DNA of 64,000 nucleotides from Chrysemys picta bellii (lineage: Eukaryota): the NCBI RefSeq assembly GCF_011386835.1, contig NC_088802.1, positions 2,232,001 through 2,296,000 on the forward strand, written 5' to 3'. The translations under genes and the position numbers were made by a program. Below, piece by piece: positions 20,686 to 63,445 of this stretch. The notes beneath the pieces are model-generated. The model did no database searches. It saw only the letters and a program-made list of their open reading frames with translations, and was not told the DNA's origin. Each line of letters begins with the position of its first letter. The first letter of the stretch is position 1.

Positions 20686-21090
20686 CTAATACATCTTCTT
20701 CACCATCTCCAAGAGCGGTCCAGCCGGGATGTAGTTGACCATCTCCGCCACAGTCTTCACGATGTTCCTGCTGAAGACTCTGGCCACAGCAGTGTCCCAT
20801 CGGGGCATTTTGATGTTGTACTGGACTTGCCCTTCCACATGGAAGATGGATATTTCATTCTCCTGCGTGCCGGACACGAAGACCAGCACCGTGGTCTCGC
20901 TTTGGATGGTCATCCTGGCGTTCTGCTGGACACAAAGCGGCTCCTGGGAGAACTCACTCAGCGCTAGATTGAAACAGGCCTTGAGCTCCTCGGTCAGCCG
21001 CTTCCGGGACTCCAGACGCGTCCGGACCTGGAGAAGCCGCTCGATGCTCAGGGGTTCTGGGAGGGTGGATTTAACCACACACCCACCCAT
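20686..21090 (-). CDS. Uncharacterised 134-aa protein with one copy of the 98-aa domain (gene A)
   Basis: ORF MGGC..PEPLS..CF..A..F..EPLCVQQNARM..FVSG..ENEISI..G.VQY aligns with the repeats of 36065-38455; acceptor aatttccttcctttgtag| at 21142/21141; in-frame TGA two codons before cccATGG. Confidence 0.75.
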   Translation of the reverse strand: MGGCVVKSTLPEPLSIERLLQVRTRLESRKRLTEELKACFNLALSEFSQEPLCVQQNARMTIQSETTVLVFVSGTQENEISIFHVEGQVQYNIKMPRWDTAVARVFSRNIVKTVAEMVNYIPAGPLLEMVKKMY

Positions 21091-23369: not shown

Positions 23370-25775
23370 ATGGAGTGTGTGAGTTGTGGGAGTAGAGGGG
23401 TATTAAGGTTGGTTCTTTGGGGGGTGGGATGGGAGCTGTGGGAAGAGGTTGGTAGATATATAGGGCAGGAGGTCTGGTGGTAGGGGGTTGCTGGGTACTG
23501 GGGATATCTTTAATTCCTCTCCCTGGGCTGGGGGGGGGGCTGGTTGACCCCTAGTCCTGCCTCCTATCTGTATGGGGGAGTTGAGTCTGTCTCCTGGTAG
23601 CCAAGCCCCACCTGGTGACGGGGAAGCTGTGAGATCCCTGAGGTTGGGAGAGGGTGATTCCCTCTTCTAGGCCTGAGAGGGTCATGTTGAGGTGGGGGCA
23701 GGTGTAGTGGGCTGGAGGGGTCACAGCTTTGTTACCTGCAACCCTATGTGAAATTCATCTTCCTTGTTTGCTCCCCACCTGGTGCCCCCTAGAGGGGACA
23801 GGCCCCATTCCCTGAGCCAGCCAGTCCCTGCCCTGGGGCTGGATGGGTACTGGTGCCCCCTAGAGGGGACAGGCCCTTGCCCTATTCCCCCACCCCCTTG
23901 AGCCAGCCAGTCCCATGCCCTAGGGCTGGGTTGGGGCCTGTGCCCCATTCCCTGCCCCCTGTGGGGAGGGGTGCTGGGGGGTGCTCACCTCTCCCCCTTT
24001 CCCCAACCCCCAGGGGATGGTTCTGACCCACTTGAAGGTCCAGCCTGGTGAGTGCATTGCTGTGAAGGGGATGGTGCCACTGGATGCCAAGAGGTGAGTG
24101 TGGGCTGACGGGCATGGGGAGGGAAGGGTTAACCTGATCCTGGGGGGGGAATGCTGGGGTCCCCCTGCCCCCCAACAGCACAGTGGGGGACTCTCTGGGA
24201 CCCCAGGATGGGGCTCAGCCCCCCACAGGGGGCAGCATCTCCCTGCAGACCCCTCACCCCCTGGGTCTGCATCATCTCAGCCCCCCTGAATCCTCCAGGG
24301 CCCCCCTGCCTCAGCCCTGACCCCTTTCAGGGGGAGCTGTGGGGATGGGGTGTGTGCCAGTGGATTCCCCCATGGGATGGGGGGCTGGTCTCCTCAGGAC
24401 TGACCCCTGGGGTGTCCATGGCCCCAGCACCTTCTCTGTGGGGCTGGCTCTCAGTCCCCTGCATGGGATGAGCTCAGTGGGACAGAGCCCCACAGACTGT
24501 GGGGCCTGGGCTGCAGGGGGACTGGGGCTGGCGTTGGTCCCCTGATGCTCCTCTCCACCCCAGGAAGGGGCTGGAGGGTGGCAGAGAGGATGCTGGGAAA
24601 GCTGTGCCATAGGCTGGTGCATTGTGGGAAGCTCCCAGGTGATGCCCAGCAGGTGACCCTGCTGCTGAGGATGGTGGGAAACTGTCCCACAAGGCAGCAG
24701 GGCTGTGGCTTTAGCCCAGGGGATTCTGGGAGACCTGCCTGTGACCCAGAGCCTGTGGGGGTGACAGCAGGGGATGCTGGAGAATTCCCATGATGCAACG
24801 CATGTCACTGCAGGGGGCTCCATGATGCAGCACTGTCCCAGAGGATGCTGGGAAGCTTCCCACAATGCACCAGTGCAATAAATTGAGCAGAGGGAATTCT
24901 GGGAGATTCTCCCATGGTGCAGGGGGTGATGGGGAATTTCCCATGATCCCCTGTGTGGCAGAGGGGTGGCTGGAGGCTTCCCACAATGCAAAGTGAGTGG
25001 CTGTCCCTGTTTGGGGGTGGGTGGGGGGCTGGGGAAGCTGCCTGGCCCAGGTGGGGGGTCCCAGCCTGTCTCTCTCCCCTCCAGCTTTGCCCTGAACATG
25101 GGCCGGGCCGGCTCGGACCTGGCCCTTCACTTCAACCCCCGGTTCGAGAGCCATGGGGACGCTCGCATAATCATCTGCAACTCGCTGCAGGGCGGGGAGT
25201 GGGGGGAGGAGCAGCGGGAGCCGGACTTCCCCTTCCAGCCGGGGCAGGATACCAAGGTGAGGGGGGGACTGTCCAGGGGAAGATCACAGCTCCCATTCAT
25301 GATGTGAGATGGGTGGGGGGCAGGGCATTGTGGGGTGGGGGGAGAAGGCTACCCTCAAAGAGAGGGATCTACCATCTGTGGGGCACTGTCTGGGGAAGAC
25401 TGCAGCTCCCATTTGCTGGGGTCAACTGAATGGGGGGGAGGGGAGGCAGGGCACTGTGTGGGGAAGATCACAGCCACCCCATCTCAAGCAGATGAGTCTA
25501 TTGCAAGTGGGGGATGTCTCAGTCCTTGTTGGGATCAGGGGAGGGGGGTGTAAGGTTGGGATGATATTTAACCCTGTAGGGGGCAGGTGTCTCTGGCTCC
25601 ACCCCTCACCCTCTGGCTCCTCCCCCAGATCTGCATCTCCTTCGATGCCCAGGAGCTGACGGTGGCGCTGCCGGGGGAGCAGCAGCTGAAATTCCCCAAC
25701 AGGCTGGGGCTGGAGGCCATCGAATTCTTCTCAGTGGAGGGAGACTTCAGGGTCAAGTCCATCAAGTTCAAGTAG
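23370..25775 (+). CDS. Galectin-1-like prototype galectin, copy A, 135 aa
   Basis: Exons 23370-23378 (MEC), 24014-24093, 25085-25256, 25629-25775 = 9/80/172/147 nt, the LGALS1-type structure; sugar-binding residues H44 N46 R48 H52 N61 W68 E71 R73 all present; AATAAA 25828-25833. Confidence 0.95.
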
Positions 25776-27413: not shown

Positions 27414-29059
27414 TTATGGCCCCCAATCTTCAGCCTTCACTGGCTGGTACAGTGCTATCATTTGCTGGTATGCAATTTGATTAGTCATTCGTCTGATCAG
27501 TGCCACTATACAGGGAGCAAAGCAAGCTAGGATTAATAGGGTTACAATAAAGAGTACAAAGAGGAGGAAGCCTTTTCGAAGCCATCCCAGTTGCGGTAAC
27601 CAGGAAGTAACCCAGTCCATATTCCACCCTCCCCAGGTTTGGACGGGGACATGGGTTAACTTTCTCATTTCCTTTGTTAGCTGCTTTACCGCTTTTCCAT
27701 TATCGTCAATTTGTAAGCAGCAATTAGACTCATTTAATTTTGCACAAACCCCTCCTTCCTCCGCCAGTAAATAGTCAAGGACTATATGGTGCTGATAGAT
27801 TGCACTCCTCATTTGGGTTGATTGATCGGCCTAGAGATCGAGAGCTGCGGCTGTTTGGTTAGTTAAGATTTCCAAGACAGCCTGTAACCTAATTATTCGA
27901 TTTAGGTTATAAATAGGTTCTCTGGCCCCGGATAGTAACTCATTGGGATTCCAAGTGGCCGGTCCATAATGTTGTATAATCCTTTCGGGTGGCCACTCCT
28001 GAGCTCCCCACTTTTGGGAGCTTCCGGCAGTCAGGGTGGAATCCACAAACCACCTTTCTCTAATTAAATCATCATATACCTTAATTCCCAATTTATTTCC
28101 TGCATCTGGGGTAATAGAAAGAACAAGGGTCTTATATATCCAACATAACATATCCCAGACCAATTTGGAGGCAATCTTCGGTAGGCATAGGACCCGCAGA
28201 TCCAATAATGGCCCTTTAGAGCCCAGGTTCCATTAGCAAAGGGGCCATCCCAGGTTTCCTCGTTCTCGTCGTCCTTTAGATGGTCAAAATATAAAGGATT
28301 ACCTGGCCCTAAAGGTCCCCCCACCATCCCATCAGCTGAGTTGCAATAATTACATCTCCACGCCCCAGCTCCTGCTTTCCAGACACAATCGCAGCCCCAT
28401 TTTGGCTGTTTGGTGTTAGACCAGAATTGTTTAAAACCCCATACTCGAGTTCCATTCTGATTCTGCCATGCCCATTGAAACCACCGTACCACGTGGTCCT
28501 TACTAGTGGTATTGTCTAGCTGGCAACTCGGGAATAGGGCATCGAAGAACCCATCCCGTCCTACCACCCTGCAACCTTCGGTTGTAGGGTAGTATTGTTT
28601 GGAGCATTTCACCCAAGTATTATTGGTGAGCCTCACATGGGTCTGGTTCCATCGCCCCTGATATCTAGAACAGTCACACGGGCGACAATAAGGGTCCCAG
28701 CAGTCAAACCCTGGGGATAGAGTCCAATCACACTTGCTTTCTCCCAAGTACACTCCCTCCCGCCTTGTTCGATTAAGGCAGAGAATACCCATTCCAGAAG
28801 AATAAAGTCGCCAGGGGCTACTATCCTCAGTCCAAACTCCCGTTCCATCGTGGACTATACTCAAATTGCTGAGCCACCATTTGGGCTGTACCGGCTGGGC
28901 TACCCAAGGCCATTCATTTAATTCCCCGGGGCCTCCACACACCCAACAGTTACTGAGGTTAAAGGATTTTGCTATTGTCTCCCCCAGCTGTAAAAACCTA
29001 TTTTCCCAACCATAATAGTGGTGGAAGTACATAAACAAAGATATTAACAATAATTTCAT
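27414..29059 (-). pseudogene. env: ERV1 env (ERV3/HERV-I-like), one frameshift and one nonsense codon
   Basis: CWVCGG; WPPERIIQHYGPATW; immunosuppressive domain YQHHIVLDYLLAEEGGVC followed by a CX7CC motif; TM GFLLFVLFIVTLLILACF; frameshift near 28100; TAG at 27833-27831. Confidence 0.9.
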
Positions 29060-32034
29060 TATCTTTTTCTAAACAGTTCCTTTAGTCCGTCCAGTTGCTG
29101 ATACTCACAGGTGGAGTCTTCACCTGTGCCACCCCGGGCGTCCGGAGCCGGGGCGGGCAGAGGGCCGGTGTCCTCTTCCACTGGTTCAATCTCCGGGTTA
29201 GGGTTCAGAAACCGCTTTACCCGTGTATGGTGTGCCCATTTGTCACTCCCAAGAACTTTAACTGCAGCTTGGCTGATGAGCGAGACAGTGTGTGGGCCAT
29301 CCCACCGTGGTGTAAGGGGGTCACGCTGCCACTTCTGGAAAGGGTATGTGGCCCATGGCAGGCCTCCCATTGGGGTGGAAGGGCCACACCCCTTTTGGTT
29401 GGTTCGTTGACAAACAGGGCAATTACTAACAATTCTCTGGGCTTCCATGTGCATGCCCAGCCCCTTAAGGGATTGGGTGGCCAGATCAACCATTGCCCCT
29501 GACCCCATATGTCCCTCCTTATGTATGTGCCGAAGAATTTTCTGAAGCACTGTTTGGGGGACAAAAATCTCCCCCCCTGGTAATTTCCACCATCCAGAGG
29601 GAACCTGCCGGGCCCCCGCAGCCTGCGCGTGGCACACTTCCTCAGTTGTGTATTGAGGAGGGGAGTTTTGAACTTCTGTATCTTGAATCAAGAGGAGCCA
29701 TGAGGCCCCTTCCCGTGCGGCCTCCTTTGCGGCCTGATCAGCCAATTGATTATATCTACGTTGTTCGGCCTCCGGGGCCCTTCCATGGGCCTGCACATGT
29801 ATTACGGCGACCCGGAGGGGAAGCATTAGGGCCTCAAGAAATGTTTTGATGAGACTCCCATGTGCGATTCTTTGACCTGACGCTGTGATAAATCCCCTTT
29901 CTCTCCACAGGGTCCCGTGAGCATGTACCACCATGTAGGCATAGCGACTATCAGTATACAGGTTAATAGTTTTCCCGGTCCCCAACCGGAGAGCCTCAAT
30001 AAGAGCCACTAGTTCCGCTGCTTGGGCGGACAAATTAGGACTAAGTTTAAACTTGTATACTTCTTTGTCCTTAATTACTACTGCTGCTCCGGTATACCTT
30101 TTTCCATCTATCACATAACTGGACCCGTCAACGTATCCCTCAATTTCAGGATTGGGCCAAGGCAAGTCTGAGAGGTCAGGGCGGGGCTTGGTTTCCTGTT
30201 GTAAAACCTCAATACAGTCATGAGTGGGACCAGTCTCATGGGAGACTCGAGGATCGGGCAATAGGGTAGCTGGGTTGAGGGAGCTAACTGTCCTAAAGGT
30301 TAAGTTAGGGGCTAGTAAGAGCCCTACTTCATATCTGGTATGTCGGCTGGGATTTAGATGCTTTTCCCCAGCACCTGTCCCCAGTATTTGAGGCACCCCG
30401 GGGGGAACCAGAACCTCAGTGTTCCCCCCCAGGGTCAACTTTTCAGCCTCCTGTACAAGAAGAGCGGTGGCTGCCACGGCCCGTAAGCAGGCGGGCCACC
30501 CCTTGGCAACAGGGTCCAACACCTTTGAGTAATATCCAATGGGTCGCCAGGTTGGTCCCGACCTTTGACATAGAACTCCAGAAGCTACCCCTCCCCTTTC
30601 ATGAACGTATAGGGTAAATGGTCTCCAGGGGTCTGGCAGGGCTAGAGCGGGAGGCTGAACCAAGGCCTCTTTTAGCTCTCTAAATGCTTTTTCCATCTCT
30701 CTGGTCCATGTCCAATGGAGCAGACCTTCTTTAGTTAAATATTCATACAGTGGTTTGGCTCTTCCCCCGTAGTCAGGGATCCAGAGCCGACAAAAGCCAG
30801 TCAATCCCAGGAAGGCCCTTAATTCTCGGGGGTTCCGGGGTTGGGGACAATTAAGTATCACCTGGATTCTTTCTTTACCCAGACTACGACTTCCCTGACA
30901 CAAATAATACCCAAGGAAAGTGACCTGCTGCTTAACCAGTTGTGCTTTTTCCTTTGAGACCTTATATCCCTGTGCCCCAAGGTAATTAAGGAGTTCTATA
31001 GTTTGCTCTTGACAGGCTGCCTCTGTTTCAGAACTTAAGAGCAAATCATCACAACATTGGACTATGTTACATGAAGGGGGTTTAGCCAGGAATGGGGCGA
31101 GGTCCCTTCTTAACTGGCAACCAAAAATCTCAGGTGTAGAGGTAAGTCCTTGTGGGACAATGGTCCAAACGTATTGAGCTTTGTAGTGAGTATCTGGGTC
31201 CTCCCACTCAAAGGCAAACAGTCTCTGAGACTCCAGATCAAGGGGGATGGAAAAGAAGGCATCTTTTAAATCTATAACAGAGAACCAACTGTGATTTTTG
31301 GGAACTTGGCCCAGAATAGTATGGGGATTCGGGACAACTGGATAGGGGGCCTCTATTAACTTGTTAATCTGTCTTAGATCCTGGACCAACCGATACTGGC
31401 CATTAGGCTTAGGCACTCCCAGTATCGGAGTATTGTATGGGGACGTACCCTCCCTGAGCCATGTATACTGCAGAAACTTTTGAATCAGAGGTTTTAACCC
31501 GATTCTAGTGGTCAACTTAAGAGGGTATTGTCGAATTCGGACCGGCCTGCTTCCTTCCTTGAGGGAAATATGCACTGGGGAAGCATTCCGGGCCCGAGCG
31601 ACGCCTCCCTCCTCCGCCCAAACCTCAGGGTTAACTCCTGCCAATTGGCTCCCTCCATTCCTTCCCGGAAATTCCGGGGACTGATTTCTAGCGCTTGTCA
31701 GGGCCATCTGGTAATTGGAGGAGTGCTGTTTAGGAAGTCTAACTTCCATAGTCCCATTGTCGAATGAGATTTCTGCCTGCACTTTAGTAAGGATATCTCG
31801 ACCGAGGAGCGCGATGGGACAAGAGGGACTGCAAACAAACTGGTGGGAGATTTGACAGTCCCCTATTTTCACTAGAAGAGGCAAAGTTTTTTTTTTTTCC
31901 AAAGATGTAGTTTGTCCCTCTATGCCTTGGACCATGGCACGTCCCCGGGCTCTACCTCGGGGAGCCTTATTCATGGGGAGCAAACTAAGGGTGGCCCCAG
32001 TATCAATAAGGGCTTCAATTGGGCGGCCCTCCAC
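29059..32034 (-). pseudogene. pol: ERV1 pro-pol, open frame but RT motif altered and integrase core deleted
   Basis: Protease LIDTGA; RT with QCCDD in place of YxDD; RNase H YVDGSS/AELVAL/YTDSRY; integrase HHCC joined directly to C-terminal PRWDGPHTV. Confidence 0.92.
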
Positions 32035-34719: not shown

Positions 34720-36060
34720 TAGTTACTAGGGTGATAGTGAAATGTCCCTTTCTGGCCACATGGCCTGCATGTGGCCTCATTAATCAGGGTATCTGAGGGG
34801 AACCCAGCTCTCACAGAATAACGGGATCAACCTCCATGCAATTAATGTCCATAGTGTTCTAGGGGCAAACAGTTCTTCCTCTGTTAATTTAAAGAGCACG
34901 GAGTGTCAACAACTGCTACCAGCAGGGACCCTCCCAAACCACCCTGCCTGTCCGTCTTTGGTGCACCATGGAGAAATATCACTTTGTGTTTATAAATTCT
35001 GCACCCTGGTCGGGAGCGGGGCAAAGGAGAGGCACATGGTTCCCATCAGATGTCCTGACACAGTTTGGGAACCCCATGTGTGCAAAGCCACCAGTGATTT
35101 CCTGAGCATTACCCAGCAGCGTGACCTGGTTGGCCAGCACCTTGTCAATGGCACAGCCGTCCTGCCTGGGCATGGCCCCAAGAGTTGATCTCCCTGTGCC
35201 GAATTGGTTGGCTACAGACCAGTTACGTGGTGGGACGGCCAACTTCCAGAGGGCAGCGGTGAGCCATTTCTCCATGTGTGTGGGCACCGTGTGTCGCTAC
35301 GTGTCGCTGAAGCTCCGGAGTCCGTTCTGCACAGAGCTCAGACTAGGTAACCTTCCCCAGCCGGAGATTGTCTCACCACTGCTGGGTCGCCCCAGCCCTG
35401 CAGAACCGTCCTCTCCCGCCGACCTACGCCGGGTTCCCGGGCCCAGAAACAGCACTGAACCCTGTGTAGCTGATACAGGAACTGGTCAACAAGTTCCAAC
35501 AGCTCAGTATTGTCCTCTGCCTCCTGGTGCCACCAACACAGTGTGGTCTCAGCCGTAGAATATTCTCCTGCTCCGGCATCATCTGCTCGGTGGTGCAATG
35601 GGTGAAGTCCAAGGACAAATTGTCCAGCTTTGACTGCTGTAATACAGCCCAAGCTACCTCTGTGTACTGGCGGTTGTCCCATGGCAGAGGGGAGCAGTGT
35701 TGGATCCAGGCTGGCTGGCAGCAGGTTGACAATGGTGGAAGCCCAGGGTGAAAGGAACCACGGGGGTGCAGACAGTGGAAACCTGGGACTTTAAAAAAAA
35801 AACATTTGAACCCACCTGGCTTCCCACGATACACAGCAAAAGCAATCCCAGGATGCTCGCTGCTCAGGAGTGAAGCAAAGGACCCTGGGATGTCCCTGGA
35901 GGATGCTCTGCCGTCAGTGCATAGCAAATGGCCGCTGTGTGTTCCCATGATATGAACTGAAAATGGAACGGGAATGGGCCGTGTGTGGGCACGCGATTGC
36001 ATCCTGCAAGTTACCCGACATGCATCAAAGAACTTGGGATTACAGGCCCCATGTAGACAC
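34720..36060 (-). pseudogene. PIF/Harbinger transposase relic
   Basis: Fragments CFWARE, ALWKLA..SVANQFGTGRST..GFAHMGFPNC..DGNHVP..EFINTK and a DPAYPL-like region; TIR-like GTGTCTACA at ~36060. Confidence 0.8.
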
Positions 36061-36064
36061 ATAT

Positions 36065-38455
36065 TTAGTCCCTGCCAGACACTTTGTAGTTCATGAGAAG
36101 TCTAGCAATCCATGGCCAACCTCCTGACACCTGAACCGTGTACTGGATTCTCCCCTCTTCACCTTCACACACGGTGATTAAATTCTCCCCCCACCCGGAG
36201 ACAAACTCCAGCTCCTGCCCATCCCACCGGATCAGCAGCCTGGCGTTCTCCAGCACGCACCGGGGCTCCTGGCAGAAACCCTGCCAGGCTCGGTCAAAAC
36301 AGGTTCTCAGGGCGTCAGTGTCTCTATGACAGGACCCCAGTTCACTCAACACGCTCCGTAGGGTGTCAGCACTCAGTGACAGCCGGCGGGCGCGTAGCTG
36401 AGCCAGGTACACATGCACTGGGATCTTCACAACACGGTACTGGGCTTTCCTGTCCCTATAGCTCACGGAGATCTCACACTGCCCCTCCCCTGAGAGGAAC
36501 TGCAGGCTCCCCCCATCCCACCGGATCCTCATCCTGGCGTTCCCTTGCACCCACGGGGGCTCCTGGCTGAACTGGGAAATGGCCTCCCCAAAGCAGCCGC
36601 TCAGCTCCTCACCCAGCCCCCCCCAGCGCCACATTCTGTCCCGCACCCTCGCTAGGTCTGCGACACTCAGCGGTTCTGAGCTGGCATGTGACCAAGTCAC
36701 TGGCCTGTCCCCTCCCAGCTCTGTGATGTGATACTGGGGTCTCCCATCGGCGAGGAGCACCGAGATCTCACACTGCCCCTGGCCGGAGACAAACTCCAGC
36801 TCCTCCCCGCCCCACCGGATCAGCAGCCTGGCGTTCTCCTGCACACACCGGGGCTCCTGGCAGAAACCCTGCCAGGCGCAGTGAAAACAGGCTCTGAGAT
36901 CATCTCTGTCCCCCATACATGACCCCAGTTTGTCCCGCACTCTCCACAGCGTGTCAACGCTCACTGGTTCTGGGCGGGCGCGTAACCGAGCCAGGTACAT
37001 GTGCATAGGGAGCTCCCCAACCTCGTACTGGGGTGTCCCGTCCCTACAGTACACAGAGATCTCACACTGCCCCTCACCCGAGAGGAACTGCAGGTTCCCC
37101 CCGTCCCAGCGGATCAGCAGCCTGGCGTTCCCCTGCACACACCGGGGCTCCTCGCGGAAACCCTGCCAGGCACAGAGAAAACAGGCTCTCAGAGCGTCAG
37201 TGTCTCCATGACAGGACCCCAGTTCACTCAACACTCTCCGTAGGGTGTCAGCGCTCAGTGACTCTCGGCAGGTGTGTAGCCGAGCCAGGTACACAGGCAC
37301 TGGGATCTTCACAACACGGTACTGGGGTTTCCCATCCTCATAGCGCACAGTGATCTCACATTCCCCCTTCCCCGAGGTGAACTCCAGCTCCTCCCCACTC
37401 CACCGGATCAGCAGCCTGGCGTTCTCCTGCACACACCGGGGCTCCTGGCGGAAACCCTGCCAGGCGCAGTGAAAACAGGCTCTGAGATCATCTCTATCCC
37501 CCATACATGACCCCAGTTTGTCCCGCACACTCCACAGGGTGTCGGCACTCAGTGGTTCTGGGTGGGCGCGTAACCGAGCCAGGTACATGCGCATGGGGAG
37601 CTTCCCAATGTCATACTGGGGTCTCCCGTCCCTGTAGCGCACGGAGATCTCACATTCCCCGTCCCCTGAGAGGAACTCCAGGCTCCCCCTGTCCCACTGG
37701 ATCCCCATCCTGGCATTCCTCTGCATGCACGGGGGCTCCCGGCTGAACTGGGAAATGGCCTCCCCAAAGCAGACACTCAGTTCCTCACCCAGCGCCCCCC
37801 AGCGCCCCAGTCTGTCCCGCACCCTCGCTAGGTCTGCGACACTCAGCGGCTCTGGGCTGGTGTGTGACCAAGTCACTGGCCTGTCCCCTCCCAGCTCTGT
37901 GATGTGATACTGGGGTCTCAGCTCGGTGTGGAGCACCAAGATCTCACACTGCCCCTGGCCGGAGATGAACTCCAGCTCCCCCCCGTCCCAGCGGATCAGC
38001 AGCCTGGCGTTCTCCTGCACACACCGGGGTTCCCGGCAGAACCTCTCCAGGGCGAGGTCCAGGCAGCTGCCCAGCTCCTCGCCCAGCTCCCCGCATCGCT
38101 CCAGTCCGTCCTGCGCTCCCTGCAGGGTCTCCATGCTCAGCAGCTGGGGGCGGGCGCGTAACCTGGCCAGACACACATCCCCCGTGGGCTCAGCGACGTG
38201 GCACTGGGGCTCCCCATCGGTGTCACACACGCGCATCTCACACTCCCCGTCCCCTGAGGTGAGCATCAGCTCTGCCCCCTGGCTTGGGATGGCCCTCCTG
38301 CAGCTGCCCTGTACACCCGGGGGTTTTCTGGGGGACTCACACAGGCCCCGAGCCAAAGAGCTGCTCTGGGGTTTGGCCTTTTCCTCCCACATCTTCACTC
38401 TTGGCTGCACAGTCTGTTGTTTTTTCTCATTCTCCGTTTCCGGAGCCTGAACCAC
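36065..38455 (-). CDS. Uncharacterised tandem-repeat protein, 8 x 98-aa domain (gene B); first in-frame ATG at 38392
   Basis: 796-codon ORF; NAR motif at aa 149, 247, 345, 443, 541, 639, 737 and a degenerate unit at 51; no indels; homologous to gene A. Confidence 0.85.
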   Translation of the reverse strand: MVQAPETENEKKQQTVQPRVKMWEEKAKPQSSSLARGLCESPRKPPGVQGSCRRAIPSQGAELMLTSGDGECEMRVCDTDGEPQCHVAEPTGDVCLARLRARPQLLSMETLQGAQDGLERCGELGEELGSCLDLALERFCREPRCVQENARLLIRWDGGELEFISGQGQCEILVLHTELRPQYHITELGGDRPVTWSHTSPEPLSVADLARVRDRLGRWGALGEELSVCFGEAISQFSREPPCMQRNARMGIQWDRGSLEFLSGDGECEISVRYRDGRPQYDIGKLPMRMYLARLRAHPEPLSADTLWSVRDKLGSCMGDRDDLRACFHCAWQGFRQEPRCVQENARLLIRWSGEELEFTSGKGECEITVRYEDGKPQYRVVKIPVPVYLARLHTCRESLSADTLRRVLSELGSCHGDTDALRACFLCAWQGFREEPRCVQGNARLLIRWDGGNLQFLSGEGQCEISVYCRDGTPQYEVGELPMHMYLARLRARPEPVSVDTLWRVRDKLGSCMGDRDDLRACFHCAWQGFCQEPRCVQENARLLIRWGGEELEFVSGQGQCEISVLLADGRPQYHITELGGDRPVTWSHASSEPLSVADLARVRDRMWRWGGLGEELSGCFGEAISQFSQEPPWVQGNARMRIRWDGGSLQFLSGEGQCEISVSYRDRKAQYRVVKIPVHVYLAQLRARRLSLSADTLRSVLSELGSCHRDTDALRTCFDRAWQGFCQEPRCVLENARLLIRWDGQELEFVSGWGENLITVCEGEEGRIQYTVQVSGGWPWIARLLMNYKVSGRD

Positions 38456-39800
38456 AGCCCAGCCTGTGACTTGTACGTTACCCTAGACTTCTCCCCTCTC
38501 TGACCATGGAGACACACCCGCACCACGGGCCCGAGATCCGGGTCACAGTTTGGTTTTGTGTTGCCCTTAGTGGGGCTCTAGATCGGAGTCCTGCAGAGCG
38601 GGGCTGAAACGGGCTCTCAGCTCATCCGTCGCGTCCCCCTGGGATTGCAGCTTCCACCAGGTTCCCAGGGCGGAGCAGACGCAGGTCGCATGGATCCATG
38701 GTTTCCGGAGCATCCTCCTCCCAAGGGCCTCCGCTCAGCTCCTCTCCTGTCCTGCTCCAGCAGATACTGAGGAGAAAACAGGGGAATATTAGGGCTGGTC
38801 AGGGGGAGAGTCTGGAGTCTCCCAGAGCTGTAGGCCTCAGCCCCAGGCAATGGCCCATGGAGCAGACACAGGAGAGAAGTTTTTCTGTCTGTAATGGCAC
38901 CAGGCCGGGTGTCCAACATGCAGCCCGGGGCTGGATCCAGCCTTCGCTCTGCGTTTACGTGGCTGCACAACATGTTCAGCTTGTGCAGGGTTTGGGAGCG
39001 GAGACACTAAAGGAACGAGGGGCTGTGACGCTGAGTGTCACCACGCCTGACTTTCAGGTGTCTGGCAGATCACTGCCATTCACCGCGCCTGAGTTTGGTG
39101 CCTTGGCTCCTATACAATGAATGGGAAGAGCCAGGTGCTTGAGACTTCGATTCACACAAAAGCCAGCAGGTTAGGTAGGGGGACACGTAAGTCAGCCTGT
39201 CAAAATCTGCCCCTTACTGTTACATAAAGGCCACATCCTGCCATTGACCTGAGTGCGAGACCTGCTGTGCATTGTGGGAAGTGCGTAGTTCAGAATTTAA
39301 ACCCCAGCCCAGAGATCACAGCCCTAGAGGGAACCCGGCCCTGTGCTCTGAATGAGTCTGAAACCCCTGCCACAAGCGTTCTCACTTGTGTGAGAACATC
39401 TCACCCCACTGTGTCTCCTCCTGTTCTTCATCTCCTGTCCTCCTCCCCTGTGGTCTGAACGTTTCCATATCCCTGTACGTGTGTCTCTGCTGCCTGAACC
39501 CCTCTCCCCCTGCCACCTACACGCGTTTCCCTGCTAGCTCTGTCACCTGCATTCTCTCCTCATCTTCCTACACACCAGCTGTTTAGCAAAGGGGCCTAAA
39601 TACGTACATCCCATGCGGATGGGTCCCTGAAAGGCTGGGCCACTGGGGTGGTGGAGTGCTGCAGCGTTAAAGCCAGGAGCAGTGGGTTTAAGGGGGTGAG
39701 GGGTCTCTAAAGCAGGGGGTTTGGGGAAGGGAGTCCCTGTCCTGTCCTCCTTGAGCAGAGCAGGTGGAAGAAAGGATGCGACATGCAGAGTTCTCCTGTG

Positions 39801-40646
39801 ATAAGAACATAAGAGCATAACATAAGAATGGCCATACTGGGTCAGACCAAAGGTCCATCCAGCCCAGTATCCAATGCCAATCACTTAGTTTTTTGAGATC
39901 TTTTTGAAGTTCTTCACAGTCTGCTTTGGTCTTAACTATCTTGAGCAGTTTAGTATCGTCTGTAAACTTTGCCACCTCACTGTTTACCCCTTTCTCCAGA
40001 TTATTTATAAATAAGTTGAATAGGATTGGTGCTAGGACTGACCCTTGGGGAACATCACTAGTTACCCCTCTCCATTCTGAAAATTTACCATTTATTCCTA
40101 CCCATTATTCCCTGTCTTGTAACCAGTTCTTCTTATCCCATGACAATTTAATTTATGTAAGAGCCTTTGGTGAGGGACCTTTTCAAAAGCTTTCTGGAAA
40201 TCTAAATACACTATGTCCACTGGATCCCCCTTGTCCACATGTTTGTTGACCCCTTCAAAGAACTCTAATAGATTAGTCAGACATGATTTCCCTTTACAGA
40301 AACCATGTTGACTTTTGCCCAACAATTTATGTTCTTCTATGTGTCTGATAATTTTATTCTTTACTATCGTTTCAATTAATTTGCCCGGTACTGACGTTAG
40401 ACTTACCTGGTCTATAATTGCTGGGATCACCACTAGAGCCATTTTTAAATATTGGCGTTACATTAGCTATCTTCCAGTCATTGGGTACAGAAGCTGATTT
40501 AAAGGACAGGTTGCAAACCATAGTTAATAGTTCTGCAACTTCACATTTGAGTTCTTTCAGAACTCTTGGGTGAATGCCATCTGGTCCCGGTGACTTGTTA
40601 CTGTTAAGTTATCAATTAATTCCAAAACCTCCTCTAGTGACACCTC
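39801..40646 (-). mobile_element. CR1 LINE fragment, internally deleted
   Basis: RT pieces [28 protein letters not shown] and KFTDDTKL; 3' tail (TTCTTATG)n. Confidence 0.9.
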
Positions 40647-40858
40647 ATAAATAAAATAAAAATAATAAATGAATGGAGATATCCTATCTTGTAGAACTGG
40701 AAGGGACCTTGAAAGGTCATTGAGTCCAGCCCCCTGCCTTCACTAGCAGGACCAAGTACCAATTTTGCCCCAGATTCCTAGGTGGCCCCCAAAAGGATTG
40801 AGCTCACAACCCTGGGGTTCAGCAGACCAATGCCCAAACCGAGCTATCCCTCCTCCCC
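40647..40858 (-). mobile_element. Tortoise PolIII/SINE (tRNA-derived head, CR1 tail)
   Basis: Minus GGGAGGAGGGATAGCTC..GGTTGTGAGCTCAATCC..GGACTCAATGACCTTTCAAGGTCCCTTCCAGTTCT..(TTTA)n. Confidence 0.85.
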
Positions 40859-42229
40859 TAAATGCCTCAGATTTGTCACAGATTGAGTGGGGCTGAAATT
40901 TACCCTCACCGTGAGCTCAACTATAATTAGTATGCAAAAGTTCAAATAAAATGTTACAATCTAAAATAAGAAACGCTGAAGGGAAAAAGGTACAAATGAG
41001 AGACAGAAAGTCAGGAGTTAGTCCAAACAAAGGTGCCTCCTGATACAACCCAAGGATAGAGTTAAAATTCTGCTTGGTAAATGAGAAAATGTGGGTCTGG
41101 AAATTAATGAACCACAATCGGTGGGACGGATATTATGCCTAGTTGGTGGACAAAATAATGAGGGGATGGGCTACTCCTCCCATCACTCCCTTTTTGGGTT
41201 CTCGAAGAGAGAGACTTTGCGGGGGAAATACAGAAGAACAGAGGGAGGCTGTCATCATCATGGCTACCAACCCCCACCCTTTCCTGGGACCCTGGGCCTT
41301 CACCATCCCGATCCTGAGAAATGTTCTGACCAGACCGGGCTAGAGAGTCTGATCCAGATGACACCGCCTGAATCCCAAACACCATCTGAGATGAAAAAGG
41401 ATTGGACCTTAACAACAACTCCAATCCATCTCAACTAACTTCTTTTCTTTTCCCCAAGGGACAGTTATTACCATCTTCGCTACCCTCTAATAGACTGTCA
41501 AACAAACAGGTTTGTTCTTTAAAGATTCTCTCCAGCTAAAGGGAAAGTCAACAGGGGATGTTGTTACGATGAAAGCCTTACGTAATGCTTTCCATTTCCA
41601 ATGCTTCCACTGTTTTTCCTTCTTTTCTTTGTCTTTAAAGGTTTAAAGGATTTTTAATGGGGTGTTTGCCATGAGACTAGGCAGGCTGATGTCTCTAGAG
41701 ACCAAACACCAAACCATAATGCTGGGCAGGGGCTGGGTTATGATAACACCTTTGTAACATGTGTTCCTTCTAAATTAATTCCACAGCCCCCACCCCCAGA
41801 ATGTGGAGCACTTGAGAGCCCTGGTCGTCCTCTCCCCTCTACATGCTTCCCTGCCACTTGGCTCCTTTCTCCTCGCTCCCTTGGATCTACAGGGGTTTGC
41901 CAGACTTTCCGTTCTCCAGAATGCAGAGACATTGTTCTAATTAGACACAGCTTGCAGTAAGGGAGGATTAAATGTATGACAGGTTCATACACAGGGGTCA
42001 TGATGAAAAGTCGCGTCAAGAAACATAAAATTATGGGCATTAGGGGGAATTATGTTTTCTAAGAAGATCAGTAAAATTACTGGGAAATTTTACATGGTAT
42101 TAAAGTTAAATACTATTGTATTTGCTGTCAAATATTAATACTGCTGGTTTAAAAAAATTGCCAGTGGTTTCTTATAAAAGAGAGAAGTAGTTATATGGTT
42201 TGCTGGTACATGCTGACCCTATTGGTTAT

Positions 42230-47539: not shown

Positions 47540-50190
47540 CCCTTACTGTCTTTTGAATAGCAGCTTAAGTCCCAAATCGTCGTTAGCAGTCTTCTCTGCA
47601 GGCTGGACAGTTCACTGTTCAGGAGTGGGCACTGCTTTCAGTCGAGAGTGATGAATCCAGTTCTTGTGTCCTTCGACCTTTGCCACTGTATGGGTGACAA
47701 GCAGGATGGTGTGGGGTCCCTTCCACTTCTCTTGGAGAGGCTCATCCTTCCAGGTTCGCACGAGAACGGAGTCACCAGGCTGCAGGGAGTGGACCCGGAG
47801 TATCCAGTAGAAGAGGCTGTGAATCTTTGGTGTGCCTGTGAAGAAAAGAAAGAACAGCAGACAGAGGGCACATGTACTGAGACAAGAAACCATACCCCAT
47901 CTCCCACTCCCCTGCCAGAACTGGGGTACCATTCATAGGCCATGCTCTTCCAAACATAATCTCGAAGGGACTAAGCCCTATCCTGCCCTTAGGGAGAGCA
48001 CAAATGCGAAGTAACACAAGGGGCAAAGCATCAGGCCACTCAAGAGAGGCCTCCTGACAGACCTTTGAGAGGTGTCGCTTGAGTGTCTGATTTGTGCGTT
48101 CCACTACTCCACTGGCTTGTGGTCGCCAGGGTGTGTGGAGTTTCCAGGGCATTTGCAGAGCACTTGATATCTTTTGAACCATTTGAGATGTGAAGTGTGT
48201 TTCATTGTCAGATTCCATCCACTGAGGAAGGCCGAAGCGAGGAATGATCTCCTTAACAAACTTAAGAGCCACTGTCTTGGCAGTGTTGTTGCGACATGGG
48301 AAGGCTTCAGGCCGCCCGCTGAATCGATCCACTAAGACGAGAAGGTACCTGTACTCTTGAGTCCTGGGAAACTCAGTAAAGTCTATTTGCCGCACCAATC
48401 CTGGGCCTGGGGTAGGTTCCAGGGTGGCTGGTGGCACTGCTACTTCTGGTCGAGGGTTATTCTTTTGGCAGATTAAACCTTCAGCTTGTACCTGTGATGC
48501 TAGTGGTTTAAGTCCAGAGGTTAGAAAATATTTATTCATGAGCTGGATAAGAGCCTCTCTGCCTGCGTGTGTGGTTTGATGCAGTTTCTGCAACACTGGT
48601 TGAATCAGGCCCTTGGGCAGGAGGATTTTTCCCTCTGTGGAATAAAGCCATCCCTCCCTGCGTGTGTGGTTTGATGCAGTTTCTGCAACACTGGTTGAAT
48701 CAGGCCCTTGGGCAGGAGGATTTTTCCCTCTGTGGAATAAAGCCATCCCTCCCTTTCCTGGAGACCGAGACTGTCAGCCAGGTTTCTGTCCTCTTGGGAG
48801 TACTGAGGGGCTGCAAGCTCACCCACTGATGGGATGAGGGCATGCATTTGGGCATTCTCCTCAGTTGCTGATTTCAGGGTAGCAGCTCGCTTAGCTTCCC
48901 TGTCTGCTCTGGCATTGCCCTTGGTTACATTTTGATCTTCCCTTTGATGGGCTTTGCAATGCACCACTGCTACTGCTGAGGGGAGTTGTACTGCTTCTAA
49001 CAGCCGGAGAATTTGAGACCCATGGTTGACCGGGGAGCCTTGGGCTGTTAGCATCCCCCTTTGCTTCCACAAACCAGCGTGAGCATGCAATACCCCAAAA
49101 GCATACTTCGAGTCAGTAAAGATATTAACCCGTTTGTCTTTTGCCAGCTTGAGTGCCCGAGTCACGGCCACTAGTTCAGCAAGCTGGGCCGACGTTCCTG
49201 CTGGTAAACTCTCAGCTTCCACGGTATCATGAAGAGACACAATAGCATAACCAGCCCTCCTTTGCCCATCCACAACAGTACTACTTCCATCTGTATACCA
49301 TTCCAAGTCAGCATTTGGGAGTGGCTGATCTTTTAGATCTGGGCGGCTAGAATACTGAACATCTATGATTTCTAAACAGTCATGTTCCTGGTTTTCTGTC
49401 TCTGGTAGCAATGTAGCTGGATTAAGGGAGGGACAGGTCTGCAGGGTGATTTCAGGATTCTCTAACAGCTTCGCGTGGTACTGAGCAACCCGAGCCTGTG
49501 TGAGCCAAAGACCACCCTTAGTGTCCAGCAAGGCTCAGACCATATGGGGAATATACACTTGGACAGTTCCTCCCAGTGTCAGTTTCTCCGCTTCCCCAAG
49601 CACTAGAGCAGTAGCTGCGACCGCCCTCAAACAGGCTGGCCATCCCTTTGAAACTTGATCCAGTTGCTTAGGAAAGTATGCCACAGGATGCTTCCAGGCA
49701 CCTAATAGCTGAAATGCCCTGTCCGCTTCTGGGGACCAGTGAAAGGGGTCATGTTCCGCTCCCTTAACACATTCATACAGAGGTTTAGCCCACAGTCCAA
49801 ACTCTGGAATCCATATTCTGCAAAAACCTGCCATGCCCAGGAATGCCCTAAGCCGTTTGCTGGGGATGGGAACTTGGCAGATAGCCTCCTTTCTTTCGTT
49901 TGAGAGCTGTCTCTCTCCCTGCCTGATGTGAAATCCCAGATATTGAACCTCTGAAACAGCAATTTGGGCTTTGCTTTGAGATACCCTGTATCCTCGCAGT
50001 TTAATAAAGTTTAGGAGACTCACAGTAGCTCTGAGACAAGGGATTAGATCCACAGCAGCAATTAGCAAGTCATCTACATATTGCAGCAGGAGGGCTCTGT
50101 CTGAATTATCCCACTTCTCCAAGTCTCTGACCAAAGCCTGTCCGAACAGAGTGGGGGAATTTTTAAATCCTTGAGCCAATACTATCCAGC
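47540..50190 (-). pseudogene. pol: ERV2 pol (partial RT, RNase H, integrase), frameshifted
   Basis: QGFKNSP..QYVDDLL; WYTDGSS..AELVA..FTDSKY; QIDFTE..LVDRFSG..ESDNETHF..SGVVERTNQTLK. Confidence 0.92.
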
Positions 50191-57217: not shown

Positions 57218-58811
57218 ATGTTTCTTCTTAGCAACAAGAAGAAAGTCAAGGAAAGTGTGGGCCCCTTACTGAATGAGGGAGGCAACCTAGTGACAGAGGA
57301 TGTGGAAAAAGCTAATGTACTCAATGCTTTTTTTGCCTCTGTCTTCACAAACAAGGTCAGCTCCCAGACTGCTGGACTGGGCAGCACAGTATGGGGAGGA
57401 GGTGACCAGCCCTCTGTGGAGAAAGAAGTGATTCGGGACTATTTAGAAAACCTGGACGAGCACAAGTCCATGGGGCCAGATGCGCTGCATCCGAGGGTGC
57501 TAAAGGAGTTGGCGAATGTGATTGCAGAGCCATTGGCCATTATCTTTGAAAACTCATGGCGATCGGGGGAGGTCCTGGATGACTGGAAAAAGGCTAATGT
57601 AGTGCCTATCTTTAGAAAAGGGAAGGAGGAGGATCCGGGGAACTACAGGCCAGTCAGCCTCACCTCAGTCCCTGGAAAAATCATGGAGCAGGTCCTCAAG
57701 GAATCAATTATGAAACGTTTAGAGGAGAGGAAAGTGATCAGGAACAGTCAGCATGGATTCACCAATGGGAAGTCGTGCCTGACTAACCTAATTGCCTTCT
57801 ATGAGGAGATAACTGGCTCTGTGGATGAGGGGAAAGCAGTGGATATGTTATTCCTTGACTTTGGCAAAGCTTTTGATACGGTCTCCCACAGTATTCTTGC
57901 CGGCAAGTTAAAGAAGTATGGGCTGGATGAATGGACTGTAAGGTGGATAGAAAGCTGGCTAGATCGTCGGGCTCAACGGGTAGTGATCAATGGCTCCATG
58001 TCTAGTTGGCAGCTGGTTTCAAGCGGAGTGCCCCAAGGGTCAGTCCTGGGGCTGGTTTTGTTTAATATCTTCATTAATGATCTGGAGGATGGTGTGGACT
58101 GCACTCTCAGCAAGTTTGCAGATGACACTAAACTAGGAGGCGAGGTAGATACACTAGAAGGTAGGGATCGGATAGAGAGGGACCTAGACAAATTAGAGGA
58201 TTGGGCCAAAAGAAACCTGATGAGGTTCAACAAGAACAAGTGCAGAGTTCTGCACTTAGGACGGAAGAATCCCATGCACTGCTACAGACTAGGGACCGAA
58301 TGGCTAGGTAGCAGTTCTGCAGAAAAGGACCTAGGGGTCACAGTGGACGAGAAGCTGGATATGAGTCAACAGTGTGCTCTTGTTGCCAAGAAGGCTAACG
58401 GCATTTTGGGCTGTATAAGTAGGGGCATTGCCAGCAGATCGAGGAACGTGATCGTTCCCCTCTATTTGACATTGGTGAGACCTCATCTGGAGTACTGTGT
58501 CCAGTTTTGGGCCCCACACTACAAGAAGGATGTGGAAATATTGGAAAGAGTCCAGCGGAGGGCAACAAAAATGATTAGGGGGCTGGAGCACATGACTTAT
58601 GAGGAGAGGCTGAGGGAACTGGGATTGTTTTGTCTGCAGAAGAGAAGAGTGAGGGAGGATTTGATAGCTGCTTTCAACTACCTGAAGGGGGGTTCCAAAG
58701 AGGATGGAGCTCGGCTGTTCTCAGTGGTGGCAGATGACAGAACAAGGAGCAATGGTCTCAAGTTGCAGTGGGGGAGGTCCAGGTTAGATATTAGGAAACA
58801 CTGTTTCACTA
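57218..58811 (+). mobile_element. CR1 LINE ORF2 (RT) segment, truncated at both ends
   Basis: 546-aa open frame with [39 protein letters not shown]; ends at TTTCACTA before the 3'UTR. Confidence 0.95.
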
Positions 58812-61191: not shown

Positions 61192-63445
61192 GGGGGGGGT
61201 GGGTGGGTTGACCCCTAGTCCTGCCCCCTGTCTGTATTGGGGAGTTGAGTCTGTCTCCTGGTAGCCAAGCCCCACCTGGTGACTGGGAAGCTGTGAGTTC
61301 CCTGAGGTTGGGGGAGGGTGATGTTGTGGGGGGGCAGGTGTAGTGGGCTGGAGGGGTCACAGCTTTGTCACCTGCAACCTTGTGTGAAATTCATCTTCCT
61401 TGTCTGCTCCCCATCTAGTGCCCCCTAGAGGGGACAGGCCCTATTCCTGGTCCCCCTGAGCCAGCCAGTCCCTGCTCTAGGGCTGGATTGGGGTCTCTGC
61501 CCCCTGTGGGAAGGGGTGGTGGGAGTGACTGGGGGTGCTCACCTTTCCCCCACCCCCAGGGGATGGTTCTGACCCACTTGAAGGTCCAGCCCGGCGAGTG
61601 CATCGCCGTGAAGGGGATGGTGCTGCCGGATGCCAAGAGGTGAGTCTGGGCTGATGGGTGTGAGGAGGGAAGGGTTAACTTGATCCCTGGGGGGCAATGC
61701 TGGGGTTCCCCTGCCCCCCAACAGCACAGTGGGGGAGTCTCTGGGACCTATACATCTCCCTGAAGGCATCTCAGTCCTGGATCTGCATCCTCAGACCCCC
61801 CTGAATCCTCCAGGGTCCCCTGCCTCTGCCCTGACCCCCTTCAGGGGGAGCTGTGGGGATGGGGTGTGTACCAGTGGACTCCCCCATGGGATGGGGGATG
61901 GTCTCCCCAGGACTGACCCCTGAGGTGTCTATGGCCCCAGCCCCTTCTGTGGGGCTGGCTCTCAACCCCTGCATGGGGTGAGCTCAGTGGGACAGAGCCC
62001 CACAGACTGGGGGGCCTGGGCTGCAGGGGGACTGGGGCTGCGTTGGGCCCGTTGATGCTCCTCTCCACCCTGGGAAGGGGCCGGAGGGCGGCAGAGGCGA
62101 TGCTGGGAAAGCTGTGCCATAGGCTGGTGCAATGTGGGAAGCTCCCAGGTGATGCCCAGCAGGTGACCCTGCTGCTGAGGATGGTGGGAAACTTTCCCAC
62201 AAGGCAGCAGGGCTGTGGCTTTCTCCCAGGGGATTCTGGGAGACTAGCCTGTGACCCAGAGCCTGTGGGGGTGACAGCAGGGGATGCTGGAGAATTCCCA
62301 TGATGCAACACATGTCACTGCAGGGGGCTCCATGATGCAGCACTGTCCCAGAGGATGCTGGGAAGCTTCCACCAGTGCAACAAATCGAGCAGAGGGAATT
62401 CTGGGAGATTTTCCCATGGTGCAGGGCAGCAGGGGATGATGAGGAATTTCCCATGATGCTCTGCATGGCACAGGGGTGGCTGGAGGCTTCCCACAATGCA
62501 AAGCAAGTAGCTGTCCCTGTTTGTGGGGGGGCCCTGGGGTGGGATCCCCGCTGGCCCCTGGGGAAGCTGCCTGGCCCAGGCAGCGGGTCCCAGCCTGTCT
62601 CTCTCCCCTCCAGTTTTGCCCTGAACATGGGCCGGGCTGGCTCAGACCTGGCCCTTCACTTCAACCCCCGGTTCGAGAGCCACGGGGACGCCCGCATCAT
62701 CATCTGCAACTCGCTGCAGGGTGGGGAGTGGGGGGAGGAGCAGCAGGAGCTGGACTTCCCCTTCCAGCCGGGGCAGGACACCAAGGTGAGGGGGGCACTG
62801 CCTGGCGGGAGATCCCAGCTCTCCCTCTGTGGGGTGGACTGATTGTGTGTGTGTGTGTGTGTGTGTATGAATCTTGAGCTCCTTGGTAGCAAACACAGCC
62901 CTCTTCTCTCCTAGCTAGGGTGGGGTGATGGGTACTGTTTGGGGGAAGATCACAGCTCCTGTTCATGATGTGAGATGGGCGGGGGGCAGGGCATTGTGGG
63001 GTGAGGGTAGATCCCTCTCTTTGAGGGCAGCCTTCTTCCATCTCTGGGGGACTGTGGGGGAAAATCACAGCTCCCGTTTGCTGGGGTCAGCTGAACGAGG
63101 GGGAGGAGGCAGGGCACTGTGTGGGGAAGACTGCAGCCACCCCATCTTGAGCAGATGAGTCTATTGCTAGTGGGGATGTCTCCAGTCCTGCTTGGGATGT
63201 GAGGGGGGGGGTGGGGGGTGTAAGGTTGGGATGATATTTAACCCTGTAGGGAGCAGGTGTCTCTGGCTCCACCCCTCACCCTCTGGCTCCTCCCCCAGGT
63301 CTGCATCTCCTTCAATGCCCAGGAGCTGACGGTGGCGCTGCCGGGGGAGCAGCAGCTGAAATTCCCCAACCGGCTGGGGCTGGAGGCTGTTGAATTCTTC
63401 TCAGTGGAGGGAGACTTCAGGGTCAAGTCCATCAAGTTCAAGTAG
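61001..63445 (+). CDS. Galectin-1-like prototype galectin, copy C, 135 aa, R73Q
   Basis: Exons 61001-61009, 61560-61639, 62614-62785, 63299-63445; intact frame and splice sites; WGEEQQEL instead of WGEEQREP; AATAAA 63520-63525. Confidence 0.93.
61155..61188. repeat. (GT)n microsatellite
   Basis: About 17 GT units in galectin C intron 1. Confidence 0.95.

Follow-up and report, generated by a model that had tools for sequence, protein, structure and literature searches.

Filaggrin-type and mucin-type genes carry many near-identical units within one giant exon, and the number of those units varies. TRIM clusters and the chicken BG genes, in turn, are multigene families linked to the major histocompatibility complex (MHC) that evolve by birth and death. 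The locus described here lies in a 64,000-nucleotide stretch of the Chrysemys picta bellii genome (the whole of which is hereafter termed the window; RefSeq assembly GCF_011386835.1, contig NC_088802.1, positions 2,232,001 to 2,296,000 of the forward strand), and its central element is gene B, an open reading frame (ORF) on the minus strand at 36065..38455 in window coordinates, which encodes tandem copies of a 98-residue unit. As in filaggrin- and mucin-type genes, the units stand head to tail in one large exon, copy number is variable, the ends of the array are conserved and the inner units are shuffled. Gene B is a real protein-coding gene and not a satellite. We read it as a single-exon member of an undescribed gene family, the product of which would be a cytosolic, multivalent binding rod, and assign this reading as a whole a probability of roughly 0.6.

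The gene B frame comprises 796 codons with no internal stop (stop codon at 36065-36067), and the other five frames of the same interval contain 14-33 stops each, with a longest open run of 180 codons. Because the frame is uninterrupted and contigs from sequencing runs are collinear with the genome across both ends of the ORF, gene B is probably a single coding exon. The frame opens with GTG, 21 codons before the first ATG (38390..38392, minus strand; residue 22, MWEEK...), which is the likely start and also begins both the identical 775-aa gene B model held in public protein sets (P0004) and the Atlas record. In the Platysternon orthologue (P0002, described below), an ATG occupies the position of this GTG, and the protein begins MVQAPE. 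Translated from the first ATG, the product is acidic (pI 5.6) with a mass of 87.7 kDa; gene B encodes 39 cysteines, its highest 19-residue hydropathy window reaches 0.58, and no signal peptide, membrane segment or N-x-S/T sequon was found in the product.

The repeat structure is evident at both the protein and the nucleotide level, as the gene B protein is 45% identical to itself when shifted by exactly 98 residues (4-9% for shifts of 90-109), and Tandem Repeats Finder detects a period of 294 bp across 36204-38041. The first 60 residues form a leader that is unrelated in sequence to the unit and is conserved with Platysternon (38276..38389 as counted from behind the ATG; Cp1-Pm1 81% identical); within it, an AGG at 38294-38296 occupies the site of the start methionine (MADPSEG...) of the large paralogues. 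The leader is followed by part-unit 1 (38150..38275, residues ~61-102), which retains the C-terminal portion of the unit only, namely strands 2-4 and the last helix. Seven complete units (residues 103-789) then adjoin one another without linkers, all on the minus strand: six of 98 aa, i.e., unit 2 (37856..38149), unit 3 (37562..37855), unit 4 (37268..37561), unit 5 (36974..37267), unit 6 (36680..36973) and unit 7 (36386..36679), and a final cap unit of 99 aa, unit 8 (36089..36385), with one extra codon. Seven tail residues (36068-36088) complete the protein. A first-pass annotation of this sequence had described eight exact repeats in one exon, in a strict 98-aa register with no indel or stop. 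The single exon, the period of 98 and the absence of stops are upheld, while the array is better described as seven complete units preceded by an N-terminal part-unit, and the register is broken by the additional codon in the last unit.

A profile derived from the units of turtle, alligator and paralogues matches units 2-8 of gene B with independent E-values of 1e-37 to 1e-43 and the part-unit with 1e-16; the latter hidden Markov model match spans profile positions 10-97 and is driven by its C-terminal part. In an alignment of 34 units from the same sources, including all those of gene B, F37 and E40 are invariant, and L4, S5, L9, C29, P41, N47, F61, S63, G64, G66 and Y81 are at least 90% conserved. 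The residues earlier noted as kept (C-F, F..EP.CVQ.NAR, F.SG.G.CEI and PQY) are thus real features of the unit. In cap unit 8, GEN.I replaces G.CEI and the unit ends in W..IARL, and these cap motifs (GEN.I, W..IAR) are common to unit 8, to the last units of two- and four-unit relatives, and to gene A, a one-unit ORF of the same window. The proposed likeness between gene A and the last unit of gene B is borne out by these motifs and not by overall identity, which is highest for unit 3 (45%) and lowest for the last unit (37%).

The 98-residue domain is an undescribed family and not a variant of a known one. None of the 34 single units matches any Pfam family. Searches of the Protein Data Bank (PDB) by sequence (phmmer) and by profile returned nothing credible (E of at least 0.08), and Foldseek searches of the PDB with one- and three-unit models returned no match below E 0.14. 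Comparison by VIA-align with 48,161 PDB representatives gave best Z values of 4.4 and 4.0, where the usual background is 7-8. Fold searches of the Swiss-Prot AlphaFold models and of the ESM Atlas yielded no match to the unit models, and an ESM Atlas feature search with gene B and gene A yielded no usable one. The literature, searched by locus names and by topic, contained no paper on this family that we could find. The first-pass annotation had called the domain unknown, and the AlphaFold model, Foldseek and the profile searches agree in giving no described family or solved structure. Several rows returned by these searches were rejected: those for the whole of gene B in Pfam (GH65C over 29 residues, DUF2867 and bDLD1) are short, scattered chance matches that are inconsistent across units, and the fold rows for OTU/tymovirus-type deubiquitinases and REDD1 (Foldseek E of at least 0.16, template modeling (TM) score ~0.3, VIA-align Z of at most 4.4) are not meaningful. 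An OTU-type cysteine protease was likewise rejected, given that C29 lies inside helix 2, that no histidine is conserved, and that there is no catalytic Cys/His pair.

Structure prediction gives the unit a compact fold. With 34 aligned units as input, the AlphaFold2 model of one unit (the sequence of unit 5) has a mean predicted local distance difference test (pLDDT) of 85.5 and a predicted TM score (pTM) of 0.74, and begins with two long helices and a short one, followed by a four-stranded antiparallel sheet and a helix at the end. It superposes on the AlphaFold DB models of family members from Pogona, Thamnophis, Alligator and Platysternon with TM scores of 0.88-0.91 and a root-mean-square deviation of 1.3-1.9, and on a fragmentary Chelonia entry in the AlphaFold DB clusters with 0.70. 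Models of uncharacterized scallop, oyster and coral proteins in these clusters reach TM scores of 0.67-0.74, and their possible homology to the unit rests on predicted folds only. For a three-unit segment, the model reaches pLDDT 92.2 and pTM 0.74, which suggests defined contacts between units and a fairly rigid rod instead of free beads. The image of beads on a string put forward earlier is therefore doubtful, considering this pTM and the lack of any linker between units.

Gene B belongs to a sizable family. The source genome contains more than 80 family matches, all of them on a single contig (C12, 2.25-3.25 Mb), where the family is interleaved with galectin genes and, beyond the window, with TRIM exons. 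Six large open frames of 673, 796, 1283, 1355, 1746 and 1947 codons hold 7, 8, 13, 14, 18 and 20 profile matches, respectively, and smaller paralogues in the same genome have one, two or four units. Accordingly, the 1-to-8 expansion proposed in the first-pass annotation is too simple, since the same genome has 2, 4, 7, 13, 14, 18 and 20 units and alligators and squamates have 2-5. Some of the two-unit paralogues (L013, L022, L014 and L017-L019; contig C12, 2.54-3.24 Mb) have their units flanked on both sides by a membrane segment, and several two-unit copies carry frameshifts or stops, so that the family also includes pseudogenes.

Relatives were sought beyond this genome by word-indexed and exhaustive profile searches, the latter of which returned 81 matches among 1.84 billion cluster representatives. 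Family members turned up across all the turtle lineages covered (Pelodiscus, Platysternon, Mauremys, Malaclemys, Macrochelys, Chelonia, Caretta, Dermochelys, Gopherus and Chelonoidis), in the two alligators and, among squamates, in Anolis, Pogona, Phrynocephalus, Paroedura, Hemicordylus, Thamnophis and Naja; no bird or mammal is found among the named matches of the profile searches. Members from outside the turtles have five units at most. Distant yet convincing tandem copies are present in the hemichordate Ptychodera flava (P0066, P0085 and P0094; E 1e-16 for P0066), which keep the C, NAR.xI, F.SG and Y motifs at very low identity, and no Pfam domain was found alongside them. A weak profile match was also obtained in an eel. 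Low-scoring matches to a TPR/NB-ARC protein (P0087) and a bacterial Ig/RTX protein (P0091) are false, and others cover positions 55-90 only. In Platysternon megacephalum, family members (P0002, P0003, P0007, P0009 and A0A4D9DF47) have been deposited under names that nothing in their sequences supports, namely dTDP-4-dehydrorhamnose reductase, matrix-remodeling-associated protein 8, MoeA, coproporphyrinogen III oxidase and DnaK.

Evidence that gene B is maintained as a gene comes from its syntenic orthologue in Platysternon (P0002, L023:6001-9279), which has 11 units in an open frame, the same leader and cap, and likewise a convergent galectin gene downstream. The variation in repeat number among turtles that the first-pass annotation had proposed to look for is thus present, with 8 in Chrysemys gene B and 11 in this orthologue. 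The first, second and last units pair between the two species at 81, 73 and 79% identity, respectively, and the inner units have no one-to-one partner. In the non-coding flanks of the two loci, substitutions amount to 9.3% and indel events to 7.2 per kb, and 80% of these indels would shift a reading frame, their length not being divisible by three. The orthologous end units have diverged by 9-16% at the nucleotide level between two turtle families and are still in frame: approximately 5 frame-breaking indels would be expected in the 906 aligned end-unit bases, and approximately 7 in the whole gene on one lineage, where none is seen, and neither orthologue contains a frameshift or stop. Under simulated neutral change at 4.65% divergence, the probability of no stop arising on one lineage is 0.013.

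A site-wise test places this constraint within the unit. The 73 complete units of the source genome were reduced to 36 independent closest pairs, which give a ratio of non-synonymous to synonymous differences per site (pN/pS) of 0.62 with strong heterogeneity. In these, 34 of the 98 unit columns are under-substituted (p<0.01) in the presence of synonymous variation, e.g., L9, F37, E40, P41, N47 and Y81; the counts of non-synonymous to synonymous differences are 0/6 at both L9 and Y81. A few columns lie above the neutral rate, the best of them column 57 (1.96, p = 0.002). Selection therefore keeps the frame and the core residues of the fold in gene B, and most other positions change at approximately the neutral rate. 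The core of the unit is firmly kept and its surface changes freely, possibly in a diversifying manner.

The arrangement of similarity among units indicates how the array changes. The helical N-terminal halves of the gene B units pair as 3 with 7 (85% identical), 4 with 6 (90%) and 5 with 8 (80%), i.e., at 80-90% identity, and the C-terminal tails pair as 2 with 6 (94%), 3 with 5 and 4 with 7, at 72-94% identity. Consequently, the tail of one unit together with the N-half of the next forms three module types, each of which occurs twice in gene B. These pairs of modules locate the breakpoints in the conserved middle of the unit, from EP.CVQ.NAR to G.CEI. The pattern is that expected of unequal crossing-over between misaligned units, the process by which the array evolves: breaks lie within the conserved core, and a unit tail travels with the helical half of the following unit. 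Such a process explains both the conserved end units and the differing unit numbers, with the end units remaining orthologous between species and the inner ones being reshuffled (8 units here, 11 in Platysternon and up to 20 in paralogues).

The cellular location of the domain is suggested by its shorter relatives. One- and three-unit proteins start with MGGC (gene A, P0055), MGNC (P0057) or MGAC (P0033), and these MGxC starts are probably of the acylation type, judging from their sequence, although gene A is without the residue usual at position 6 of such a start, which is small. Other relatives have a hydrophobic segment before two units or a hydrophobic C-terminal tail after four, and in the large arrays (gene B and the MADPSEG-type paralogues) no anchor, signal peptide or membrane segment was found. 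The relatives differ mainly in their potential anchoring. Given the acylation-type starts and tail anchors of relatives, together with the absence of a secretion signal from gene B, the domain would work in the cytosol, partly in association with membranes. Units may stack into a continuous rod, as the three-unit model suggests, and the arrays may serve as multivalent binders or scaffolds in which avidity is combined with a single binding surface shown in numerous, slightly varied copies. An immune role is speculative, and would fit the location among galectin genes and TRIM exons as well as the birth-and-death pattern. A more ambitious version of this reading, in which the unit is an ancient deuterostome domain of unsolved fold, turtles assembled as many as 20 copies of it into polyvalent recognition proteins that are cytosolic and MHC-linked, and module shuffling diversifies the binding surfaces, is a tentative one that we consider rather improbable at present.

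Sequencing data are consistent with transcription of gene B. A single study contributes two small runs (~110-130 million letters, guessed to be RNA) that contain exact contigs over 35400-39142, including pieces that cross both ends of the gene B frame, and contain none over 39143-39733, whereas a DNA-like run of 2,000 million letters covers every bin. As data this small could not randomly assemble a unique region of a 2.4-Gb genome, the pattern is a transcript-like footprint, or possibly a captured target. Under a related species label, gene B pieces with 2-4 differences per 200-330 bases are also present.

Several points weigh against our reading of gene B. Across the three orthologous end units, the rate of non-synonymous substitution (dN) is 0.131 and that of synonymous substitution (dS) is 0.132, a ratio of 0.99 that looks neutral when taken alone, and the median dN/dS among units within gene B is 0.86. 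No column survives correction for 98 tests as evidence of positive selection. The rod shape and the cytosolic location are drawn from models and from relatives, and the hydrophobic start of some of these relatives could be a cleavable signal peptide. Transcription is suggested by runs for which the RNA type is itself a guess and by contigs that show neither strand nor ends. With respect to selection, the first-pass annotation had asserted that the protein is under selection and had named dN/dS near 1 with disrupted orthologues as the opposing pattern; the ratio is indeed close to 1 in the end units, and the frame is intact in both orthologues. Since this mean coexists with constraint on 34 of 98 columns, the constraint is site-specific and not general, and the assertion holds in that narrower form.

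Among the alternatives, the one that fares best is that gene B encodes a secreted or cell-surface protein of the beads-on-a-string type that acts outside the cell, perhaps together with galectin. The galectin neighborhood is conserved between species, the unit is rich in cysteine, and some short relatives begin with the hydrophobic segment already mentioned as a potential signal peptide. The large arrays lack a corresponding feature, however, and gene B lacks N-glycosylation sequons. Furthermore, C29 is the only cysteine conserved across the family, and C68 is lost in cap units without the loss of a partner, which argues against a disulfide-stabilized extracellular module. The MGxC starts or hydrophobic C-terminal tails of other relatives also place the domain in the cytosol, and we regard an extracellular product as unlikely.

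A slightly less probable alternative is that gene B forms the terminal exon of a gene of the TRIM type, onto which upstream RING, B-box and coiled-coil exons are spliced, and in which the array replaces PRY-SPRY. This proposal derives from P0011 (886 aa, MetaClust), in which a B-box and a coiled coil are joined to an array with its first 120 residues nearly those of gene B. Additionally, a pyrimidine-rich candidate acceptor ('cccccag', ~38327-38335) lies within the stretch where the similarity to P0011 begins, and the contig carries more than 150 TRIM exon matches. The genomic evidence points the other way: a tblastn search with the B-box and coiled-coil part of P0011 found no TRIM exon in the window, and the nearest one on the right strand is ~84 kb upstream of gene B, with another array gene between. 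A contig of run X2 at 38051-38447 is unbroken across the candidate acceptor, with no joint seen near 38327, and the leader upstream of this site is conserved in frame with Platysternon, in which the gene model has a single exon. No RING, B-box, SPRY or Ig domain was found in gene B. With regard to this alternative, P0011 may have been predicted as a chimera or may represent another paralogue; considered by itself, it is either a true TRIM-array fusion gene of some turtle or a chimeric prediction.

The least probable alternative, in which gene B is decaying or has no function and its frame stays open only because duplication was recent and the sequence is rich in GC, could draw on the end-unit dN/dS, a GC content of 61% with arginine high relative to lysine, the stops in some paralogue copies and the absence of any sequencing run recorded as RNA, and is very improbable in view of end units that are old and still in frame, the missing frame-breaking indels, the low simulated probability of an open frame, the column-specific constraint alongside synonymous change, the same core residues in alligator, squamates and hemichordate, and the confident AlphaFold2 unit models.

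The surroundings of gene B are those of an MHC class III neighborhood, as the window contains a V-set immunoglobulin (Ig) exon, G-patch and ankyrin exons (read as GPANK1) and casein kinase II beta (CSNK2B). A galectin exon is located at 25059..25292 on the plus strand (tblastn; 94% identical to the second copy), and a second copy at 62555..62842, also on the plus strand (Pfam Gal-bind_lectin, E 6.6e-14). The position beside a lectin in the MHC that was claimed for gene B is therefore correct, and no support was found for a functional tie between the two. The ORF of gene A (20686..21090, minus strand) has 134 codons; its product starts with MGGC, contains a single unit of the cap type and has a C-terminal tail that is conserved (..YIP.GP....KK..). 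A relative of gene A, P0055 (136 residues, from short assembled contigs), has the same start and tail layout. Near-identical words of gene A occur in many small runs under at least five species labels; by this measure, gene A is much better conserved than gene B. Gene A is arranged head to head (divergent) with the galectin exon at ~25.1 kb, and gene B is convergent with that same exon. The next array gene (the 1283-codon frame) lies about 7-12 kb past the end of the window. The alternation of galectin and array genes, with exon copies 94% identical at the protein level, suggests that a segment made up of galectin and array is itself repeated.

Two endogenous retroviruses and a CR1 element are interspersed among the genes of the window. 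The first retrovirus (28064-32034, minus strand), located between the galectin exon and gene B, retains an open pol-like frame of 991 codons and an open env-like one of 331, and the second (47772-50179, minus strand) consists of three pol pieces. The CR1-type reverse-transcriptase ORF (57218-58858, plus strand) has 546 codons. A very high-copy element (39734-40915) just upstream of gene B has a contig depth of 10^3-10^6 in all runs. Elsewhere on contig C12, more than 150 matches to a query made of a TRIM B-box and coiled coil, many of them 75-91% identical, lie at 2.35-5.5 Mb and 9.7-30.8 Mb and point to a very large TRIM expansion on the chromosome piece that carries the 98-residue family.

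If our reading of gene B is correct, this family represents a domain for which no relative has been described, the same probably being true of its fold; the domain is old enough to be shared with a hemichordate and is seen, among the named amniote matches, only in turtles, crocodilians and squamates. The turtle arrays would rank among the longest regular arrays of a domain in the MHC region, with single exons of up to 1947 codons, and the family would be a new candidate for reptile immunogenetics, placed amid galectin genes and with TRIM exons on its contig. It would also offer a clean natural case in which crossovers within the conserved core of a folded unit drive the evolution of an array, and a confidently predicted target for structural biology for which there is no template. 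Should the polyvalent recognition reading hold as well, the arrays would be innate immune sensors or restriction factors of a new class, with a logic comparable to that of TRIM or LRR-based systems.

The closest counterparts of gene B are uncharacterized reptile proteins: LOC135974677 and LOC101940633 of Chrysemys, LOC142825960 of Pelodiscus, LOC112548570 of Alligator sinensis, LOC100554454 of Anolis and LOC106551331 of Thamnophis. Like gene B, these have the 98-residue domain with its core motifs and a cap unit, in tandem without linkers. The alligator and squamate members contain 1-5 units, compared to 6-20 in turtles, and their anchors differ (an acylation-type start, a membrane segment, a hydrophobic tail or none). 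The OTU/tymovirus deubiquitinases and REDD1 share with the unit only a loosely similar arrangement of helices plus sheet. Filaggrin- and mucin-type genes resemble gene B in the layout of the exon; however, their units are of low complexity, disordered or processed to monomers, whereas those of gene B have a compact predicted fold and are 34-71% identical. Finally, as with the TRIM clusters and the chicken BG genes, this is a clustered family of the MHC region with fast turnover, and it has no relation to either of them in sequence or fold.

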